64,000 nucleotides of DNA, taken from NCBI GenBank assembly GCA_965649825.1, contig OZ287696.1, positions 1,097,101-1,161,100 on the forward strand. The letters run 5' to 3'. Source of the DNA: Penicillus capitatus. Its lineage: Eukaryota > Plantae > Chlorophyta. Each line of letters opens with the position of its first letter. Position 1 is the stretch's first letter. Position numbers and translations under genes: made by a program. The notes beneath the pieces are model-generated. The model was given only the letters and a program-made list of their open reading frames with translations. It was not told the DNA's origin and made no database searches. Of the stretch, positions 2,361-57,744 are shown piece after piece.

Positions 2361-5300
2361 ATGAACTTTATTAACAACGGAATGGAAGCTGCTTGCGTTC
2401 GAGAAACGTTGTTTATCGATTTCGACGCGCCGACAGCGATTGCTTGGTCCGCGAATGGAAATCTGATCGCCGTCGCCTTTCCGCACCGGGACCAGACCAC
2501 CGCACGTGTCATTCTCCTGGAACCCGACGTTCTGCATGTATTGTCCAGGCGGTACAGGAGACACCCGCCTTTAACGACGCGGTCTTCTGCAGGAACACAC
2601 GGTGCTCGAAGTCCCCCTTCAATCCCCTTCCGACTTCGTCGCCTTCCTGAGCTTCTCTCCTCCACACGCATCTCTGACGCTCATAACGGCGACCAAACAG
2701 GGGAAGATACTGTTGTGGACACCACGTCAGAATTCCCATACCTACCAGCCTGTCGCGCTCAACACCTGGGCTGCTGAGCATGTGATGCTTCCGTGGTTGA
2801 GCAGAGATGTTGATCGATCTGTACGTTACATTAGGTGACAATCGAGACTGGAGAGTTGCTCTTCTGTCGGTTTCTCTCGCCGCCGTCGTCTTTCCAATGG
2901 CCACCAAAAGACCCTCAATACAAACCTGTTGCGCAAGGGGCACCTCTCGAACAGCGTTTCTGTTCAATGGAACATATCGTGATAGACGATCCGGCCTGGC
3001 TCAGGGTCGGCATTCTTCATTTCCTGACCCTGGATAGATCTGGTGCGATGCATGTGCGATGCTTGATGGTTATCTGTATCTTCAGCGTCTCACTCTTGCT
3101 TCTCAGGTGCATCAGAGCGCGTTGGATAAATGGATCGTAACGCAGGGACAGAGTGTGGGCGACGTGCTTCCTGGAGAGCTACGGTGCGCGGACGTCATCG
3201 GTGGACGTGGCTCTTTTCTCACGATGGCCGTCGTTACGGAATCCAATCCGTTCATTGCTGTGCTTTTGGAGATTCGTGGACATCCGAATGGCGCAGATCA
3301 GCTCGAGACGCCTTCTTTCTCGGTGAGATCCTTCGGAGAGCATCGCGAATCCCACGAACAGCCTTTGTGTGTTCGTATCTAAAGATGGAGATGCTGGCTA
3401 CGGTGCGGCCATCGATCGAGCATCCCATCTGCGACGTGCAGTTTCGTCCTGCATCACTGGGCGATGGACTGGTCATTCTACAGAGAAGTTCCGATCGAGT
3501 TGGCGTCTCGAAGCACACGGCCGTCTCACACGATCCCGTTGGCTATACAGGTAGACAATGCATTCGTCAATGACTGCGCCTGCAATTCTGTTGCTGTGAT
3601 TGTAGAAGCCAAAAGACTGATCCTGAATCTCGACAGCATCGATTCTGCGAACGTCGAGAAGATTTCGATGGTTCTGTCCACAGACAACACCTGTGTTGGG
3701 CTGTGGGTGCCGGGGACAGCGCTATCGCTCATTTCGTTACACTCAATGTCGATCACAGATCGACTCGATCGGGGAAACGCATCCTCCTGTCTTGCGGGTG
3801 TTTTCAGTCCAAACGGCGTCTGCTTTGCCGGAATCTTTCAAGCAGAAGGACGGCTGTCCCTAGAGATTTGGAGCCTGCCTGAGGCCTCCATCGGTTCCAA
3901 TGGCGTTTTCGAGAATCTGAAATCATTCTGTCTGTGGGACTGCATGCGTGCCGTCTGGGCACTGCTCACACATGCCGATCCATGGGATATCAGCCAACGT
4001 ATCCAGAGGCATGCCCAGGCACTTCCGGAATCTCTGGCATACTTTTCTCTCTTCTACTTGGACGGAATGCTTCACCGCCATCCACACTTCAGTCGTCCCC
4101 AGTACGCCGATCTGCTCGACAGAATCAAGATTCGAGTCTTTCTCGAGAGTCGAGATCCAACGATTCAAGTCGAATGTCCCCTATTGGTAGATGCGCTCGA
4201 GGTGCTGCTCTTCTGCAGGTCGTGCTGATGGACTTATATTCAAGGCGCATGATTTTCAATCTCTATCACGCCTTCGCCTCGACATTGCTGTCCAACTCTC
4301 AGGCGGCGCACATCAAAATCTCTTTGGAAGAATGGACAGAGGGAGACAAAGAGAGCTGCAGGAGGTGGATGCACTGGATCGAGGAATTCTTTCGGCTTCT
4401 TTGCACAGTGAGGCTTGCCTTTCCTCCGGTACAAGATAGGGATACCGTTTGGCGCGTAGTGTGTCAAGACATGGTGTGTCCGAAACATCAATGCTGCCGA
4501 GAAGACAGCAGATGACGTTCCTTTCGTTCGTCTCCTCTGCGATTCGCATTTCATAAAGCGTCTCTGCACACTCCTGTACTGTTTTTGCGAATTCTCAAAA
4601 CTAAGTCTGTCATCATCGCAGTCCAATGGTCTGCTCCCTCTTCGAGATCTGGATGTCAATGGACGTCTATTTGTCTGTCTTAGAGAAGCACAAGTTCTTC
4701 AAGGATACCTGTTGCGATACCGTCAGCCAGATTCACCTTGTTGTAAAGAAGGCCAACAAACATGGGAGCATCAAGGATCAAGAATCGTGTGAAGGCGTCG
4801 AAGCTTTTAGGGACTTGGTCAGTCAGACCAGGAAGACATGTGGAGGACCAGTTCATCTGCACTATGCTCGATTGGATGGGCCCATCACAGAGGAGGTCAA
4901 CGAACAGTAGATTCGCAATCAATGATGCAGAACTGTGCAGGTCCTCCGAACGCTTCATCATCAAATCCCGATGATTCGTGAATCGACGCCATGGGATCAG
5001 ACGGCGATCGAGACGAAGGCCAGAGAATTGGGACTTCTGCCGGATCGAGCCTTGAAGGGACTGCTCTTGATGAAAGAGAAGGAAAAACGACATCCGTTCC
5101 AAATGTCGCCAAAACGCTACATACCGTACAGCGAGCGACATGAACATCATCTCTGCACCGCATCCATGTGTTTGTTTGTAGTAAGCGATTGCCTCTTTTC
5201 GATTGCATGAAGGGGAAGCCATTTACTGAGAACCGACACATTTTCTACGCAGGAGATCAGTCTTGCATCGCCGGCTTTGGCACTGTCATCAAGGTATCGG

Positions 5301-12537: not shown

Positions 12538-15500
12538 ATGGAGTCGTCTGGTCCATCAAATGCGAGTTACGTTCGTGCGGCGTCCAATGATGCGCAGTCG
12601 ACTGCCCTGTCGAGTGCGTTGCGCGCTCAGCGTCCGAGTCGCCCCTCGACGTCCAACAGCTCGACGTCGGCTGTCGTCGCGAACGTCGACGCGTGAGGGC
12701 CGTCCCGTTCACTGCTCAGAAAAGTACGCGTTGCCCTCTGCATTGTGGGGCTTTCGTGAAGAGGCGCGACAGGAATCTCATCTCCGTCTCCGTTGTCGAG
12801 AATGAAGTCGAGAAAAGCAAAGAAGAGAAACCTAGACGTCGATCTGTGAGTCCAAAATCACGGATGAAGGCCGTGGCCGAAAAAGTGAGCGCGGCAAGGG
12901 AACTGGCACGGCGACTTGCAGAAGAGAAAGAAGCAGCTGTCAAGACCGGAAAACAATACAAGTACTCAGATCGATCCCTCATGTTACCTGACATTTTACA
13001 TGTCTCAGTGAACGGATTCTGAAATCCACAGAGGCGGCTGCTACTGAGGCAGCCATACAAGCAGCTGAAGCAGATGCTATGAACAGAGCTGTAAGGTTGG
13101 CAGAAGCGGGAAAAGAAAAGGTCGCTCCACGATTCTGTCGTACACGCCCTCGGCAGCTGTTTTCAGGACGCCGAGTTGCGTTATTTGAAAAAGTTCAACA
13201 AAGCTTTGAAGGCAATGGTATTGGATGTTGCCGTGGATAAAGATGAAGCAAGGAATAGACTGGATGAACTGCTTCAGGAGTTCAAATCCGCCGAACTGGT
13301 GACAGAGGTGCATCGTCTGACCGTCGCTATGCCCGAACTGTTTTTTATCATTCTTAAGGAGGAAAGATTGGCAACAGAGGAGGAAGAAGCAGAAGAAGTG
13401 GTAGAAGCAGCGCCAGAAGTGGAAGTCCCCTCGCCACTCGTCCCGGAGGTCAGAATCAAACTGCCAGGCCGTAGTCAGAAGGAATGCTGTTCAGGTCCCG
13501 GTGGAGGAACCTAAGTTGGATACCCTCAAAGTCGCGGCAGATGCTGCTCTGCAGTCGGACACACCTTTCTTCACCGTGCCTTCTGAGCCACCGATCGGAA
13601 AACCTATTCAGTTTCTATACAATCGTCTGGCCGGTCCTTTGCCAGAAACGGATTCTGTTTCTATCAAGTACGGAATCAACAAGTGGGAGAACATTGGGCA
13701 TATCAAGATGAAGCGAAGCGAGACGTTAAGTGACATAGCGGGTGAGTGGTGGGAAGCGGACCACGATTTGGAACTATTGCTCTATCGATTCGATTTTGTC
13801 GTTGTGGATGACGTCTCTGGACTCGTGGATAACAACAACTCCAAGGATTTCTATCTGAAGCTCAAAGGTGCGCTGACAAAAAGTCAGCTCTTGGAGAAAC
13901 GTCTGGCGCTCTTCGATGAGATTGAACAGAAACGAAACGCCGAGTTCGAGGCCGAGATTTGTAGACTCAAGTGACACCACTGCTTTGTCGTTTTTGGTAT
14001 CGTTCATGGAAGATTTCAAGGCAAGAAGCCGAAGCTAAGGCAGAGGAGGCAGGCAACGAGGCTCGAGAATCTGTCGTTGCTGAATGGGAGGCAGAGCTGA
14101 CGGAACGCGTTCTAGAGACGATCGGAGATCGAAGAGCTCAGGCCATCAAGGCACTAGGACGAGAGGAAACGATCAAGGGACCACGAGTGGCCTGGTTTGG
14201 AGATCTGACGCCTGGAAGTCGCGTCCTATTGACCTACAACTCGAACGAAGGGCCTCTGAAGAATGCCACTACCATCCGGGTGCATCTGGGAACAGACAAT
14301 TGGTACAAGGAGCAAATTGACGTAAGGGATCTGCCAAACTGTGTGATCGAATTGAGGTGTCGAATTCAGATAAGAGAATTGAAAAAACTGTCCGCGGAAG
14401 AGATACAGAAGAACAGAGTGGAAGAGGAATGTGGACCAGGTAACTGGTGGGGCATCCCGATCGACATTCCTGTAGAGATTGCCGTGATGAATTACGTATT
14501 CGACGATGGAAAATCTGCCGAGTGGGACAACAACAATGGACGTGATTACACGACTCCTATCTCTAATCCCTTAACACACGATCAACTCGTCGAAAAGAAA
14601 AAGGACGATGTGCGAAATGAGTTGACGGAAGAAAGGACACAACGCGTCGAGGGAGCCGCCACAGCCGCCAGAGACCGCATTCTCTCACGCGTAAGGCCAT
14701 CGATAGACGTGGTGCATGGCTGATGTGACGTTGATGTAGTTCGATTCGAGAATCCATCGCTGGCGTTCTCAGTGGCAGTACCTCTACACCGATCCCATTC
14801 GAGTACAGGCTGGACAGTCTGTCGAAATCTGCTATCGCCCGGATCTGACGGTCTTGCGCGGTCGACCGGATGTCTATGTCCGTGTGGGGTTCAATCATTG
14901 GAGGCATCCAACGGGTATCCGTGCTATTAAGTTGGAGCCGATGATTGCCAATAACGTTGGATTTGAGCGTGCTGTTATCGATGTGCCAGAGGATGCACAC
15001 GACATGGACTTTATGTTTTCTGATAATCCTGATCTCCACGGCGGTTTTGTCGACAACAACCATGGCTTCAATTATCATTTCCCTGTCCATGGCAGCTCCG
15101 TTGCCCCACAACCGTTGAAGATCGTTCATGTCACGGTGGAAATGGCGCCGATTGCAAAAGTGGGCGGGTTGGCCGATGTGGTCACCGCACTGGGCAGAGC
15201 TGTGCAAGAAGAAGGGCACAATGTCGAGATCATCATGCCCAAGTATGACTGCATCGACTACGGCCAAGTGGAGAAGCTGGAGAAGCGTCGCAGCTTTAAT
15301 TTTGCTGGAAGCCATGTTCAAGTCTGGGCCGGTTTTGTGGAAGGACTGAATGTGACGTTTATCGAACCGGACAACGGCATCTTCTGGGTCGGGTGCATTT
15401 ATGGAGAGCAAAATGATGGTCAGCGATTTGAATATTTCTGTGGAGCCGCCTCAGAGTATCTCCGCATTTTCAACCTCTCTCCAGACATCGTTCACTGTCA

Positions 15501-16489
15501 CGACTGGCAAACGGCTCCCGTGATCTGGAGTGATCTGGCAGGGGCAAGAACCGTGTTCACGATACACAACATGAACTACGGTGTGGAGTTGATCGGTCGA
15601 GCAATGCATGCCACGACGGTTGCTACGACCGTTTCCCCAACCTATGCCACAGAGATCAGCGGGATGCCAGCAGTGGAGTCCAATTTCGCAAAGCTCTACG
15701 GTGTGCTGAACGGCATCGATGTTGACATTTGGGATCCATCTCGAGATCGGTTCTTGCCCATGAACTACAACGCAGAAACGGCCGTCGAAGGCAAAGCTGC
15801 TGTGCGTCAAGAACTCAGAAAGAGACTCAATCTCGCACAGATCGATGTTCCCATTGTGGGTGTCGTCACCCGCCTCACTCCACAGAAAGGCATCCACTTG
15901 ATCAAACACGCTGCGTGGAGGACACTCGAACGCGGAGGACAGTTTGTCCTGCTGGGCTCTGCTCCAGACCCCAAAATAGAGCACGACTTCAATCAGTTAG
16001 CAATGGATTTGAAATCGCAGTACCCTGATAGAGCATCTCTCATGTTTACGTATGACGAACCCCTGAGTCACATCATCTATGCAGGATGCGACTTCTTCCT
16101 CGTGCCATCCATCTTTGAACCGTGTGGTCTGACACAGATGATCGCCATGAGGTACGCGCATTTCTTCAACCCTGTTCGGCGACCTAGAGTGCATTGGCAG
16201 GTATGGCACGATCCCGATTGTGCGAAGAACAGGTGGACTCAATGATACCGTCTTCGATGTCGATACCGATGAGGATCGTGCTCAGTCGAAAGGCGTGGAT
16301 CCCAATGGTTTCAATTTTGAAGGAGCTGATGAAATGGGCTTGGATTATGCTCTGAATCGAGCATTGGGTTATTTCTTGAGCGATCGTCCAGCGTGGAATG
16401 CATTATCGCAATCTGTCATGCGTCAAGACTGGAGCTGGAGTTTGCCAGCTCTCGATTATCTTTCTCTCTACTACAAAGCGCTCAGCTGA
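12538..16489 (+). CDS. SS3: Soluble starch synthase III (CBM53 repeats plus GT5 domain), multi-exon
   Basis: Three CBM53-like modules (..DFVVVDD..DNNNSKDF; MNYVFDDG..WDNNNGRDY; MDFMFSD..DNNHGFNY), then VEMAPIAKVGGLADVV, HCHDW, RLTPQKG and PSIFEPCGLTQMIAMRY; TGA 16489. Start and first intron uncertain. Confidence 0.93.
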
Positions 16490-53570: not shown

Positions 53571-54069
53571 GACGGAAGGATGTGTAGAACGTCACCGATG
53601 TAAATGGCCAAATGCATCGCATCACAGCATTTCAAGTCAGAACAGTTTGACAGACAGCACACGCATTCCATGTCCATTGGTATCACGCACACACATCTCA
53701 CTCTATCCTGTCTCACACTTGCCGTTCTTCTGGGAGCATCGATCGATCACCATGCAAAGACCATCCATTTCGCTAACTACTAGCGCAGCAACATTGTGCA
53801 AAAACAATAAGTGCTCTACAGCAGCACTGTGAAATCAAACAGGACCCAGGTTGGGGTGCTCGTTTCTAAGGGCGTTTCAAAAAAGGCATGAAAGCAGGGT
53901 GGAGTGCATTGAGAAGGTCAGGGAATGAGACAATGTTTCTCTCGTGTTAAAAAGAATCGAGCGACATGGCGATCCTTGGATGCCACATTCAAGAAGTGCT
54001 GCGCATCACACATGCCTTCCTCTTCTGGTGGAAACGGGGAGATCGTTTTTTATTTTCTGGACCCTCGTC

Positions 54070-54891
54070 TCATTGGAGGGGTGAAGATTTCTTCGAGGGT
54101 GGTGGCGGACTGTCGCCCGCGTACAGTCCGTTGTTGAATACATGAAGGCGTTCGGCATTTGCCGTTCGAATCCTCTGCCGTCCATAGAGATCGCTCACGC
54201 ATCCCATGGACCTTGCTCTGAGTGCTTTCCTTGCGCTTTCTTTCGGCAAGGGGCGAATGTGGAAAGGGCCACTATTATTACCACAACTCGTCTCGACCCC
54301 CATCAACTCTTTCACGGTGTACATCCCAAATGCATCGCCTTTTGTACTGCCCACATGGTAGGGTTGATAGTATGAGGAAGAATCGGCGGAATAGCTGGGC
54401 CATGTGTAACGACTCGACAGAGTATGATCATAATCAGAAAACTCCGCTTCGCCGTCAATCGTCGGGAGTGCATCCCCCTTGCCATGCTTCATGAGCCCAG
54501 AGTACACGGCCACTTCTGGCAGGGTGCTCATTGTATGCTGATCTTGCTTGATTTCGTGAAGGATGACTTCAGTCACCTCGCCATGGCGACAGGTGTTGAG
54601 AAACACGCAGAGGAAAGCTTCCGCGACGAAGGGCACAGCGTAGTTGAGAATCAGCTTCCACCAAACCGGCCAGGTCGTGTTGTTCCAGAAATCCCCTACA
54701 GAATGATATTCCGTGTCAGCCGTGCGCAACTGTCCTCGACAGAGTCGGACAGTTATGAGCAGGCAGTAAGTACCATAGTTTGTATAGGTCAAGACGGTGC
54801 CAACGAGTGCTGCGACGAAAGAGCTCTTGAGGAGCACGTTCCACTGGAACATCGCCTTTAGCAACATCTTGCACCACGCAATGTTGCCCAT
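54070..54891 (-). CDS. Protein with N-terminal NrtS-like (small nitrate/nitrite transporter) domain and long hydrophilic tail
   Basis: Removing a 78-nt intron (54773-54696, GTACTT..TGTAG) gives LKSSFVAALVGTVLTYTNYGDFWNNTTWPVWWKLILNYAVPFVA, matching the NrtS pattern ALVVGTILxxINQGD..WxKxxLTYxVPxxV. Confidence 0.6.
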   Translation of the reverse strand: MGNIAWCKMLLKAMFQWNVLLKSSFVAALVGTVLTYTNYGTYCLLITVRLCRGQLRTADTEYHSVGDFWNNTTWPVWWKLILNYAVPFVAEAFLCVFLNTCRHGEVTEVILHEIKQDQHTMSTLPEVAVYSGLMKHGKGDALPTIDGEAEFSDYDHTLSSRYTWPSYSADSSSYYQPYHVGSTKGDAFGMYTVKELMGVETSCGNNSGPFHIRPLPKESARKALRARSMGCVSDLYGRQRIRTANAERLHVFNNGLYAGDSPPPPSKKSSPLQ

Positions 54892-55191: not shown

Positions 55192-57744
55192 CTAACCGTA
55201 CAGCCGACCAACAACTCTGCCAGTGAGTGCATAGGTTAATAGCACAGGAGTGGCAGCATCCATGAGATTGACACGCGGGTCCAGACTGTGCGCAAATCCC
55301 ACGATAATGCAGACACCGATGACCAGAGATGCATAACCACTGTCAATACTGACACTGTGTTTTCGAGCCAGACGCAACACAGACTTCATCACAGCATCCA
55401 GATCGATGCCAGCCTCGGAATGGACATCGCATTCCGTACGGAACAGACAGGACATATCTTCCACAAAGGCCTTCGGATGTGGACACTGTTGATCATCGCT
55501 CCATTGCAGCAGATGCTGAGCGGCCTGGTAGCCATCGCCCTTGGCAATCAAATTGAGGAAAGAAATGAAGTGCTTTCGGATTTTCGGTCGCAATTCTTCG
55601 GCCAGTCCAAAATCCAGCAGCACAATCTGAAGTCCTTTCTCCCCATCTTCCTGTTCCACCTCGCGCACCAAGATGTTGCCGGGATGCAGGTCTGTGTGGA
55701 CAAAGTTGTCAGACAGCAGCATTTTCAGATAGGCATCCACGCCCAATGTCACGATCTTAGTATTCAGTTCTGAAGGTGCCTTGATAAAACGCGCCACACT
55801 GACCCCCTCTTCGTACGTTTCTACGAGAACAGACTCCGACACCAACTCTTCGATGACTTGAGGAATCACAATGGCATTCTTGACCGGCTCAAAGTTTTGA
55901 CCAAATCTTCGGATGTGCGCCGCCTCTACTCGAAAATCTGTTTGAGCTGTCATTGTATTCGAAAACTGTGAAACAGATTCTCTGAGAGGCAGGTTTTTCA
56001 GTGTCGGTATTCTGGATGCCATTCCAGCGATGGGCTTCAGAATCTGAAAGTCCAGATGAATTTGTTGCCCCACATTCGGATGACGAACTTTCACAATAAC
56101 GGGAACGATATGTCCATTTCTTCTGTACAGGGCTCGATGGACCTGAGCCACACTTCCAGACGCCAACGGTTCGTGTTCGAACGCTTCGAAAATCTCTTCG
56201 ACTGGCCGGCCGAAAGATCGCAGGATTTCTCTTCGGGTCTGCTGCATGGGATGAACAGGAGCATTGTCATGCAGTGCTGACAAGACGTCACAGAATTCAA
56301 CGGGAAACAGATCTTCTCGAGCGGAAGACCATTGACCCCATTTGATGAATGCCGCTCCTCCATCTCTGCAACCCTGCAGCAATCTCTGAAAGGCGGCGAT
56401 GCGCATCCTGTTCACCCATTTCTTCCGCAGCGTCAGTTCAAAAGAACTCGATTCCTGTTTCGGACGCGACCTCTTTGCCTGCCGATGACATTTGTCCAGA
56501 GAATAGGCAATCAGCAGCAAAAAGACACCAAGTAAAATGAATGGCAGAAATGCTAAAAAAAGTCGCAAGCCACGGAGAGACAGTTCGAGCCTCTCGACGG
56601 CCGACAGTTCCTTCTCTTCGATGACGTGATCCTGTCGACCGTACAGTGGCAGCACGATCTCCATTCTTTGTCCCTGCTTTTCCATTTCCCTTGTCAAATC
56701 ACCATCATTTGAAGACATGGCTTCCAATTCTGCTTCCAGCGGAAATTCGCTGATCTCTGAAACGGGACGGGCCACATAGGATGGACAAATGACAGAAGGA
56801 TGCTTCTGCTGACTGGAAGACGCTTGCAGCGCTACGTCCAGTCTTCCGTCCACGACTCCTTGAATGGTCACACTTCTGTCACGCGGAATGTGTGGATGCC
56901 TTATCCGAGGCGCCTTAGGTCGGGGTCCAGGATTCAAATTGACAATCCACATCCATCCGTGTCCATCGGATAAAGCATGCACAGGAAGTGCACTGTCTTC
57001 TACAGCGCGTCCGTATTCAATACTATTTCTCTCACAGAAATCGATCAAGCTTTTCAGTGGCGGTGTATCTGGCAAGTCTTTCAGCAGATGGGCGACGCGA
57101 CAGGCAGCTTGTTTGTGGGCCTTCAGCCATGCCTCTTCGATGGCTTCGTTGCCGACAATCTTACCACGAGCGATCGCTTTCGCCAGTCGCTTATAGCTTC
57201 GATCTACCTCCATCAATTCCATACAGCACTCCAATGTGTGATAAGACTCGACGAAACATCTGCCCCAGATTTCGCGAATTCCGCAGTAGATCAGCACCGG
57301 TTGTTCGACCTGACCCGCGATCTCTCTCAAAAAACGCACCAGCGAAAAATCGTTCCATTCTATCAGAGGCAGTGCCGTGGATTCTGGCGTCGTTTCGACT
57401 CTTCTGGGCTGACGTGTGAACAGAGCGACAAGACTGGTGAGGCAGAAGACTTTCTCAACGAGGGGTACAATTCCGGGAACCAGCAGGCGAAGGGCGGCAA
57501 TGCCTGCGACGCGACTGGCACAGACAACAGATCTTCTCACACTTGACATCCATCCCTCACCATCCAATGTCACACTCTGTGTCATAGACTCCCCCTCGTC
57601 CACTGGAGCACCTGCCAAAAACTGAAAGGCCTGAACGCGAAGATCTGGTCGACATCCACGCCCAACGCCGATTCGGAGACTCATCGGGAACCACAGTATA
57701 GCACGCCATCCGGCCAGAAGAAAACGACATCCAGCCACTATCAA
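55192..57744 (-). CDS. ABC1/UbiB-family atypical kinase (ADCK2-like) with long N-terminal extension
   Basis: GAAFIKWGQW, LHDNAP, LASGSVAQVH, VKVRHP, QTDFRVEA, HTDLHPGNILV, LDFG; 850-codon open frame. Confidence 0.92.
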   Translation of the reverse strand: MIVAGCRFLLAGWRAILWFPMSLRIGVGRGCRPDLRVQAFQFLAGAPVDEGESMTQSVTLDGEGWMSSVRRSVVCASRVAGIAALRLLVPGIVPLVEKVFCLTSLVALFTRQPRRVETTPESTALPLIEWNDFSLVRFLREIAGQVEQPVLIYCGIREIWGRCFVESYHTLECCMELMEVDRSYKRLAKAIARGKIVGNEAIEEAWLKAHKQAACRVAHLLKDLPDTPPLKSLIDFCERNSIEYGRAVEDSALPVHALSDGHGWMWIVNLNPGPRPKAPRIRHPHIPRDRSVTIQGVVDGRLDVALQASSSQQKHPSVICPSYVARPVSEISEFPLEAELEAMSSNDGDLTREMEKQGQRMEIVLPLYGRQDHVIEEKELSAVERLELSLRGLRLFLAFLPFILLGVFLLLIAYSLDKCHRQAKRSRPKQESSSFELTLRKKWVNRMRIAAFQRLLQGCRDGGAAFIKWGQWSSAREDLFPVEFCDVLSALHDNAPVHPMQQTRREILRSFGRPVEEIFEAFEHEPLASGSVAQVHRALYRRNGHIVPVIVKVRHPNVGQQIHLDFQILKPIAGMASRIPTLKNLPLRESVSQFSNTMTAQTDFRVEAAHIRRFGQNFEPVKNAIVIPQVIEELVSESVLVETYEEGVSVARFIKAPSELNTKIVTLGVDAYLKMLLSDNFVHTDLHPGNILVREVEQEDGEKGLQIVLLDFGLAEELRPKIRKHFISFLNLIAKGDGYQAAQHLLQWSDDQQCPHPKAFVEDMSCLFRTECDVHSEAGIDLDAVMKSVLRLARKHSVSIDSGYASLVIGVCIIVGFAHSLDPRVNLMDAATPVLLTYALTGRVVGRLYG

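Follow-up and report, generated by a model that had tools for sequence, protein, structure and literature searches.

A spliced gene with an NrtS-like membrane hairpin and an alga-specific tail in the nuclear genome of the green alga Penicillus capitatus

The stretch of DNA analysed here, 64,000 nucleotides (nt) of the green alga Penicillus capitatus (contig OZ287696.1, positions 1,097,101 to 1,161,100; hereafter, the window), contains on its minus strand an open reading frame (ORF) at 54070..54891 that encodes 273 amino acids (aa) in its unspliced form. Removal of an intron at 54773..54696 yields a 247-aa protein that combines an N-terminal membrane hairpin, homologous to the bacterial protein NrtS, with a long tail found only in algal copies. 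Positions are numbered over the whole 64-kb stretch, and residues of the spliced protein are numbered aa 1-247. The gene comprises the following parts.

54774..54891, minus strand: exon 1, 118 nt, with the start codon at 54891-54889; encodes aa 1-39 and the first base of the Gly-40 codon
54696..54773, minus strand: spliceosomal intron, 78 nt, GT..AG, phase 1, within the Gly codon of the N-x-G-D loop motif
54070..54695, minus strand: exon 2, 626 nt including the stop codon TGA at 54072-54070; encodes aa 40-247
54622..54870, minus strand: NrtS-like domain, aa 8-64, split by the intron (hmmsearch, hhalign and phmmer)
54685..54843, minus strand: predicted transmembrane helix 1, about aa 17-43, across the intron (hydropathy; AlphaFold2 with an alignment)
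54586..54663, minus strand: predicted transmembrane helix 2, about aa 51-76 (hydropathy; AlphaFold2; column comparison with 45 bacterial sequences)
54073..54585, minus strand: C-terminal tail, aa 77-247, predicted to lie in the cytosol, for the most part disordered or modelled with low confidence, but containing conserved islands
54097..54234, minus strand: most strongly conserved block of the tail, aa 194-239 (alignment of six orthologues)
54049..54054, minus strand: AATAAA hexamer, a possible poly(A) signal, starting 16 nt past the stop codon (read from the sequence)

A sequence-only reading of the window had proposed an ORF at 54070-54891 with a 78-nt in-frame intron, and the ORF list and the sequence both confirm this proposal. 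The product of exon 1 is an N-terminal amphipathic helix followed by most of transmembrane helix 1 (VGTVLTYTNY). The intron begins with GTACTT and ends with TGTAG and, in P. capitatus, is in frame and free of stop codons. Because it divides the Gly-40 codon 1+2, the motif VGTVLTYTNYGD (aa 30-41) is assembled across the exon junction and is present only after splicing; the other NrtS motif, WKLILNYAVPF, occupies aa 52-62, and both appear in the N-terminal part of the spliced protein as that reading had stated. The predicted spliced junction consists of ...AACTATG followed directly by GGGATTTC..., and in a cDNA the junction would be expected to read ...ACAAACTATG joined to GGGATTTCTGG....

The case for splicing is comparative. 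Given that the database offers only ORF calls of exon 2, related genes were rebuilt from the DNA of algal assemblies, with the following introns.

L001, long-tail gene: 74 nt
L002, long-tail gene: 41 nt
L006, long-tail gene: 56 nt
L007, long-tail gene: 52 nt
L009, long-tail gene: 43 nt
L010, long-tail gene: 77 nt
L008, short gene (Bryopsis GMH45163.1): 353 nt
L067, short gene (Bryopsis GMH43800.1): about 83 nt, estimated from the gene range and the length of the coding sequence, the other seven being computed exactly

All eight related genes have a GT..AG intron in the same codon and the same phase 1 as the window gene. None of the seven exactly sized introns has a length that is a multiple of 3, so that the intron of the window gene is the only one that can be read through, and splicing is obligatory in these seven genes; the unspliced translations of L001 and L002 run into stop codons. 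Compared with L001, the window gene is 97.5% identical in exon 1, with no indel, and 90.3% identical in exon 2, and the intron is 75.6% identical with a 4-nt indel. The coding differences between these two genes are distributed over codon positions 1/2/3 as 11/8/42, a pattern that indicates purifying selection in the exon-2 frame, and the position of the start codon is kept in six orthologues. Furthermore, a gap-free alignment with bacterial NrtS across the junction requires splicing; against a profile built from 120 bacterial NrtS sequences, the alignment of the unspliced ORF falls into two segments, each scoring about 14 bits. The spliced exon-exon 23-mer found no exact match in the JGI metagenome contigs, which served as a proxy for cDNA.

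It could be argued that the intron is retained and that the product is a 273-aa read-through protein whose loop is lengthened by 26 residues, given that the window intron is in frame and stop-free and that a 265-aa ORF call of the read-through kind is present in the database. However, the lengths of the seven exactly sized introns, the stop or frame shift that retention would cause in L001 and L002, the divergence and indel of the L001 intron and the alignment with bacterial sequences, which is ungapped over the junction only after splicing, make retention very improbable, and on these comparative grounds the evidence that the intron at 54773-54696 is real is strong. The suggestion that the intron hides the similarity in the raw ORF also held: the unspliced protein has no match to NF038050, the NCBIfam profile named 'nitrate/nitrite transporter NrtS' (curated cut-off, 25 bits). 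So did the suspicion that automated annotation would miss the gene, every long-tail copy in the database being a truncated, unnamed ORF of exon 2.

Sequence comparison establishes the homology of the N-terminal domain to bacterial NrtS. The 120-sequence bacterial profile matched the spliced protein at 40.8 bits (E 7e-15; one target, Z=1), with an hmmsearch domain score of 39.6 bits, ungapped over 57 residues that span the junction; among 5000 composition-matched shuffles, the maximum score with this profile was 11.9 bits. With the same profile, L001 and L002 scored 40.4 and 26.4 bits, respectively. An unbiased tblastn search of 7.3 Gb of plasmids with the N-terminal 91 aa returned four matches, two of them annotated as nrtS (Sphingopyxis and Vibrio) and one an NrtS domain, without annotation, in the terminal part of a Ciceribacter oxidoreductase. 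A phmmer search of 1.84 billion representative proteins, with the spliced protein as query, yielded 23 matches at a library-wide E<=1e-3, namely 7 long-tail fragments, 1 repeat protein that is probably spurious, and 15 small proteins of 79-143 aa with 35-44% identity over aa ~5-73 (E 6e-6 to 1e-3). When 11 of the 15 small proteins were scanned with NF038050, all 11 matched, 10 of them above the cut-off. Finally, a profile-profile comparison by hhalign, with six long-tail domains on one side and 43 bacterial sequences on the other, gave a probability of 99.3% and E 5.4e-20 over 59 columns, and in a six-frame scan of the window the spliced gene was the sole NrtS-like match. The profile, tblastn, phmmer and hhalign results thus bear out the original description of the domain as NrtS-like.

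The genes that surround it in the window include those for a CBM53 starch synthase, ValRS, an ABC1 kinase, DnaJ, PAC2, BRCT and kinase proteins, two of which deserve separate mention.

14854-16245, plus strand: SSIII-like ORF with CBM53 and starch-synthase catalytic domains, which fits a green-plastid lineage
55192-57744, minus strand: ABC1/ADCK atypical kinase, a single 850-aa ORF, directly upstream of the NrtS-like gene

The closest matches of the ABC1 kinase are in Caulerpa lentillifera (66%), Bryopsis sp. KO-2023 (59%) and Ostreobium (56%), which places the host in the green-algal order Bryopsidales or near it; a diatom, at first suspected on account of the GC content, was rejected in view of these matches. 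Its position upstream of the NrtS-like gene is kept in the L001 and L002 assemblies, and the ABC1 kinase locus of Bryopsis (L066) has no long-tail copy beside the kinase gene. The claim that the gene is eukaryotic is supported by this position among nuclear genes of green-algal type and by the synteny in two other assemblies.

These observations also bear on whether the similarity could be a coincidence between hydrophobic hairpins, or the gene a bacterial contaminant or a pseudogene in decay. In favour of such a reading are the shortness and hydrophobicity of the domain, the lack of a significant match to the curated NrtS model and the Pfam searches, which returned nothing for either the spliced protein (at E<=10) or the unspliced one. 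Nevertheless, chance is ruled out by the shuffle, phmmer and hhalign statistics; contamination, by the spliceosomal intron, the eukaryotic flanking genes and the conserved synteny; and decay, by the 11/8/42 codon pattern together with the intact ORFs of six orthologues whose tails are as little as ~25% identical. This explanation is effectively refuted and we assign it a negligible probability. Taken together, the gene model, its splicing, the NrtS homology and the algal host are, in our assessment, close to certain.

Two types of algal gene carry the hairpin. The alga-specific long-tail subfamily, to which the window gene belongs, comprises the seven copies found. The short type is represented by two genes of Bryopsis sp. 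KO-2023 (GCA_030272585.1).

GMH45163.1, L008 6001-6785: annotated 'hypothetical protein'; canonical short NrtS
GMH43800.1, L067 3001-3470: annotated 'hypothetical protein'; canonical short NrtS

These two score 36 and 50 bits, respectively, on NF038050, above its cut-off, and a third short homologue is a transcript of Neomeris dumetosa (Dasycladales) in EukProt. All three belong to the small NrtS proteins matched by the spliced protein. The short genes share with the window gene the hairpin and the lineage (Ulvophyceae), and those of Bryopsis also share the identical phase-1 intron in the Gly codon of the N-Q/Y-G motif. Unlike the window gene, the short forms keep the bacterial version of helix 2 (V-[SA]-[ST]-Y-G), and their tails are short, poorly conserved and unrelated. 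The characterisation of NrtS as a small bacterial protein is therefore right as to size but not as to an exclusively bacterial distribution, given the short intron-bearing genes in Bryopsis and the transcript in Neomeris; in the literature searched, we found no discussion of NrtS in eukaryotes. Separately, EukProt lists for a single-cell genome of Picozoa sp. SAG31 an 85-aa NrtS-like protein (P0141, on an 18.9-kb contig), which may be a further eukaryotic copy or may stem from contaminating bacteria.

In an AlphaFold2 model computed with an alignment, aa 1-80 were predicted with pLDDT 88-95 and the tail below about 60; the helices span aa 2-14 (a short N-terminal one), 17-43 and, after the loop, 51-92. 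The single-sequence model reached a pLDDT of 38, and a Foldseek search of the AlphaFold2 model against the Protein Data Bank (PDB) retrieved no solved relative (best E 5.7). The hydropathy profile has its peaks at aa 17-36 and 53-76, and these two helices are the only hydrophobic ones. The charges K8, K12 and K22 precede helix 1, and the charge distribution suggests a topology with the N-terminus inside, the loop outside and the tail inside. The loop contains two N-x-[ST] sequons, at N44 and N45, which are conserved among the closest relatives only. The window gene retains the signature columns V30, G31, T32, L34, N38, G40, W51, L56, Y58, V60 and P61, which are 82-100% conserved in the 45 bacterial sequences (W51 in 37/45, the others in 40-45/45). 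Helix 2 carries WWK, N57, Y58 and P61 along with the subfamily-specific A64-E65. Glu65 is present in all seven long-tail members, whereas the position is acidic in none of the 45 bacterial and neither of the two short algal sequences compared; it lies on the helical face shared with N57 and P61. The window gene further shows Y67F, a change of S/G68 to L and a change of Q39 to Y after the loop Asn, and across the whole long-tail subfamily the signature of the second half of helix 2 and the Gln/His after the loop Asn are absent.

The tail (aa 77-247) is, at 171 aa, of the ~170-aa length first described, but the enrichment in Ser, Tyr and Pro attributed to it is only moderate (11.7%, 5.8% and 7.0%, respectively). 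Over the tail, the six orthologues are 25-91% identical in the alignment. The strongest island, aa 194-239, reads IRPLPKESARK..R.RSMGCVSDL.GRQ.IR.AN.ERLHVFNNGLY, and in condensed form IRPLPKE..RSxGCxSDL..ERLxVFNNGLY; R150, L151, V153, F154, N156 and L158 (tail numbering) are invariant in the six-orthologue alignment. Pfam had no match to the six algal tails, including the methyl-accepting chemotaxis protein (MCP) signalling domain PF00015, and a PDB sequence search with the tail profile had none at E<=10. A scan of JGI metagenome contigs for the conserved tail motifs gave 129 pattern matches, of which 0 were confirmed. Homology between the algal tail and bacterial C-terminal extensions was considered and rejected, the tail profile having no match to the bacterial fusion proteins. 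In the AT-rich relative L007 (245-961), the long-tail gene seems to contain at least one further intron, and its tail resumes in another ORF (665-961), which is similar to the central part of the tail of L006.

On the basis of these features, a mechanism can be proposed in which the hairpin, with its N-terminus inside, its loop outside and its tail in the cytosol, would oligomerise like bacterial NrtS and line a narrow path for a small anion such as nitrate or nitrite. This path would consist of the conserved polar face of helix 2 (N57-P61-E65) together with T35, N38, G40 and D41, where helix 1 ends, and the disordered alga-specific tail, with its conserved short motifs, would regulate or localise the protein. 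We regard an oligomeric nitrate/nitrite pathway with a regulatory tail as the single most likely mechanism, although our confidence in it falls short of an even chance. The same tentative standing applies to the broader statement that this is a two-exon nuclear NrtS-type gene of bacterial origin with a role in small-anion transport and a functional tail, when all its parts are taken as one.

Several observations weigh against this mechanism. On NF038050, the spliced protein scores 10.7 bits (E 0.38) and the domain alone 14.7 bits, both below the cut-off, so that the curated-profile search proposed as a check on the homology is not significant and broader profiles were needed; the other long-tail members likewise score 0-17.7 bits, compared with 100.3 bits for the Nostoc control, 49.7 for Bryopsis P0142 and 30.8 for Sphingopyxis. 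Given that NF038050 is centred on cyanobacteria, the experimentally tested NrtS type is distant from the window gene. The latter is a member of a divergent, tail-bearing algal subfamily of the NrtS superfamily that falls outside NF038050 as curated. In helix 2, this subfamily has replaced the bacterial-invariant Val64 with Ala, Ala/Ser65 with an invariant Glu and Tyr67 with Phe or Leu, with the loss of the [ST]-Y-[GS] motif, and a buried carboxylate is no obvious fit for an anion pathway. Moreover, nitrate-assimilation genes were found beside nrtS in none of the ~18 bacterial loci examined; the recurring neighbours or fusion partners are MCP chemoreceptors, an FAD-oxidoreductase with an extracytoplasmic function (ECF) sigma factor, and Crp/Fnr regulators. 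The case for the putative role in nitrogen uptake is weakened by both the helix-2 changes and the bacterial genomic contexts.

The Glu residue might provide proton coupling, change the selectivity or form a new interface. One way to read it is that the protein is a neofunctionalised channel or carrier for another solute (a proton, a cation or a small molecule), its specificity having shifted through the helix-2 Glu after duplication. Such a shift would fit the strict conservation of E65, with V64A and Y67F/L alongside, in the long-tail members and its absence elsewhere, the scores of the subfamily under the curated threshold, and the persistence in Bryopsis of canonical short paralogues that would have freed the duplicate to diverge. 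Yet the loop and helix-1 signature is retained (VGT..N.GD, WWK, N-Y-x-V-P-F), a Glu that can be protonated would suit proton-coupled nitrate uptake as well, and a short and a long copy were not found together in one genome. We consider a changed solute unlikely, though not negligibly so.

The bacterial contexts raise a different prospect. A small nrtS is the immediate upstream neighbour of a chemoreceptor gene with 4HB_MCP_1 and MCPsignal domains in Vibrio, Paraglaciecola, Psychrosphaera and Aliiglaciecola (L005 3986-5145; L033, L016 and L025, about 3001-4890), and in Vibrio the stop codon of nrtS overlaps the start codon of the MCP gene. This pairing is conserved, and the name 'nitrate/nitrite transporter' leaves it unexplained. 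In the Alphaproteobacteria Denitrobaculum, Rhodovibrio and Geminicoccaceae, the hairpin itself is the N-terminal membrane module of MCP proteins of ~390-420 aa with PF00015.

L048 2983-4143: NrtS-hairpin::MCP fusion
L054 2944-4122: NrtS-hairpin::MCP fusion
L040 2962-4215: NrtS-hairpin::MCP fusion

We know of no published description of such fusion chemoreceptors. Among the other contexts, Ciceribacter (L004 2864-4204) encodes a 446-aa FAD-dependent oxidoreductase with a C-terminal NrtS domain that is unannotated in the plasmid record, and in Sphingopyxis (L003 2874-4816) the FAD-oxidoreductase and nrtS are adjacent genes; in both, a gene for an ECF sigma-70 factor follows. In three other phyla, nrtS adjoins Crp/Fnr regulators. 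On a plasmid of Nostoc sp. C052 (L063 1596-6206), nrtS lies amid genes for an alternative oxidase, a GMC oxidoreductase, a tyrosine-coordinated haem protein and a globin, a context that is redox or NO-like rather than one of nitrate assimilation.

Accordingly, the algal protein might be a sensor or signalling adaptor in which the hairpin senses a ligand or state and the cytosolic tail relays it to partners. The fusions to MCP signalling domains, the position of nrtS upstream of 4HB-MCP genes and the adjoining Crp/Fnr or ECF-sigma genes all point in this direction, as do the short conserved islands within the disordered algal tail, which are typical of interaction motifs. The Alphaproteobacterial fusions resemble the window protein in joining an N-terminal NrtS hairpin to a long cytosolic extension. 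However, that extension is the MCP signalling domain, to which the algal tail has no detectable similarity; the tail is homologous neither to MCP nor to any bacterial extension and contains no recognisable signalling domain, and adjacency to MCP genes is equally consistent with a transporter that feeds a sensor. We therefore consider signalling a fairly unlikely function for the algal protein.

Returning to the proposed anion pathway, the closest known system is bacterial NrtS, for which transport activity was reportedly described by Maeda et al. (2019, Plant Cell Physiol 60:2180), the prototype being NrtS1/NrtS2 of Synechococcus sp. PCC 7002. The window protein shares with this family a gap-free two-helix hairpin of ~57 residues, at 35-44% identity to many members, with VGT-x-L...N-x-G-D ending helix 1 and W-W-K..L-N-Y-x-V-P-F in helix 2. 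It differs in being a 247-aa product of a nuclear, intron-bearing gene, whereas bacterial NrtS is a stand-alone protein of ~65-100 aa; in the changes Q39Y, V64A, A/S65E and Y67F with the lost [ST]-Y-[GS] and the score below the curated cut-off; and in the 171-aa tail, which occurs only in the algal copies, although fused forms of NrtS also occur in bacteria. With NRT2/NNP and NPF of the major facilitator superfamily (MFS) and with NAR1 of the formate/nitrite transporter family, only the proposed substrate is in common: those proteins have unrelated folds with 6-12 transmembrane helices, compared with two in the window protein, and a search of the spliced protein for Pfam MFS_1, PTR2 and Form_Nir_trans found none at E<=10. 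To our knowledge, the known eukaryotic nitrate/nitrite carriers (NRT2/NNP, NPF, NAR1 and CLC) are all large multi-helix proteins.

Both short genes of Bryopsis share the position of the intron, which implies that the family was intron-bearing before the short and long forms split; the NrtS-like family is thus old in these algae. In a set-pattern scan, the bacterial genomes with motifs of the algal short type were mostly those of marine Alpha- and Gammaproteobacteria (42-62% identity), and the single cyanobacterial sequence compared, from Nostoc, was the most distant. A neighbour-joining tree (56 columns, 78 sequences, 500 bootstraps) recovered the long-tail clade in only 192/500 bootstraps and all algal sequences together in 0/500. 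The algal gene probably came from a bacterial transfer. Of the two routes first suggested, horizontal transfer from bacteria is thus likely, whereas an endosymbiotic, cyanobacterial origin is not supported by these comparisons, in which nothing points to it. The bacterial gene would have entered the ancestor of siphonous green algae, gained the intron and then been duplicated.

These lines of evidence can be assembled into a specific model under which, in the siphonous green algae (Bryopsidales and Dasycladales), an ancient bacterial NrtS, through the acquisition of an intron and duplication, would have given rise to a Glu-bearing two-helix nitrate/nitrite path coupled to a regulatory tail. 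We regard this full model as possible but doubtful. If true, it would define a new class of very small eukaryotic nitrate/nitrite transporters, or 'transceptors', unrelated to NRT2, NPF and NAR1.

The implications extend in several directions. For the bacterial family, the contexts described above suggest that 'nitrate/nitrite transporter NrtS' may be too narrow a name to apply throughout, as the hairpin recurs as a module on chemoreceptors and oxidoreductases. For gene finding, the window gene illustrates how an in-frame intron combined with ORF-style gene calling can conceal a family. It would also represent a clean case of an old transfer from a bacterium to an alga, dated by a shared intron. 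If functional, the protein would bring a minimal transporter class of bacterial origin into seaweeds with giant cells, Caulerpa and Bryopsis among them; how these seaweeds take up nutrients is relevant to both ecology and aquaculture.

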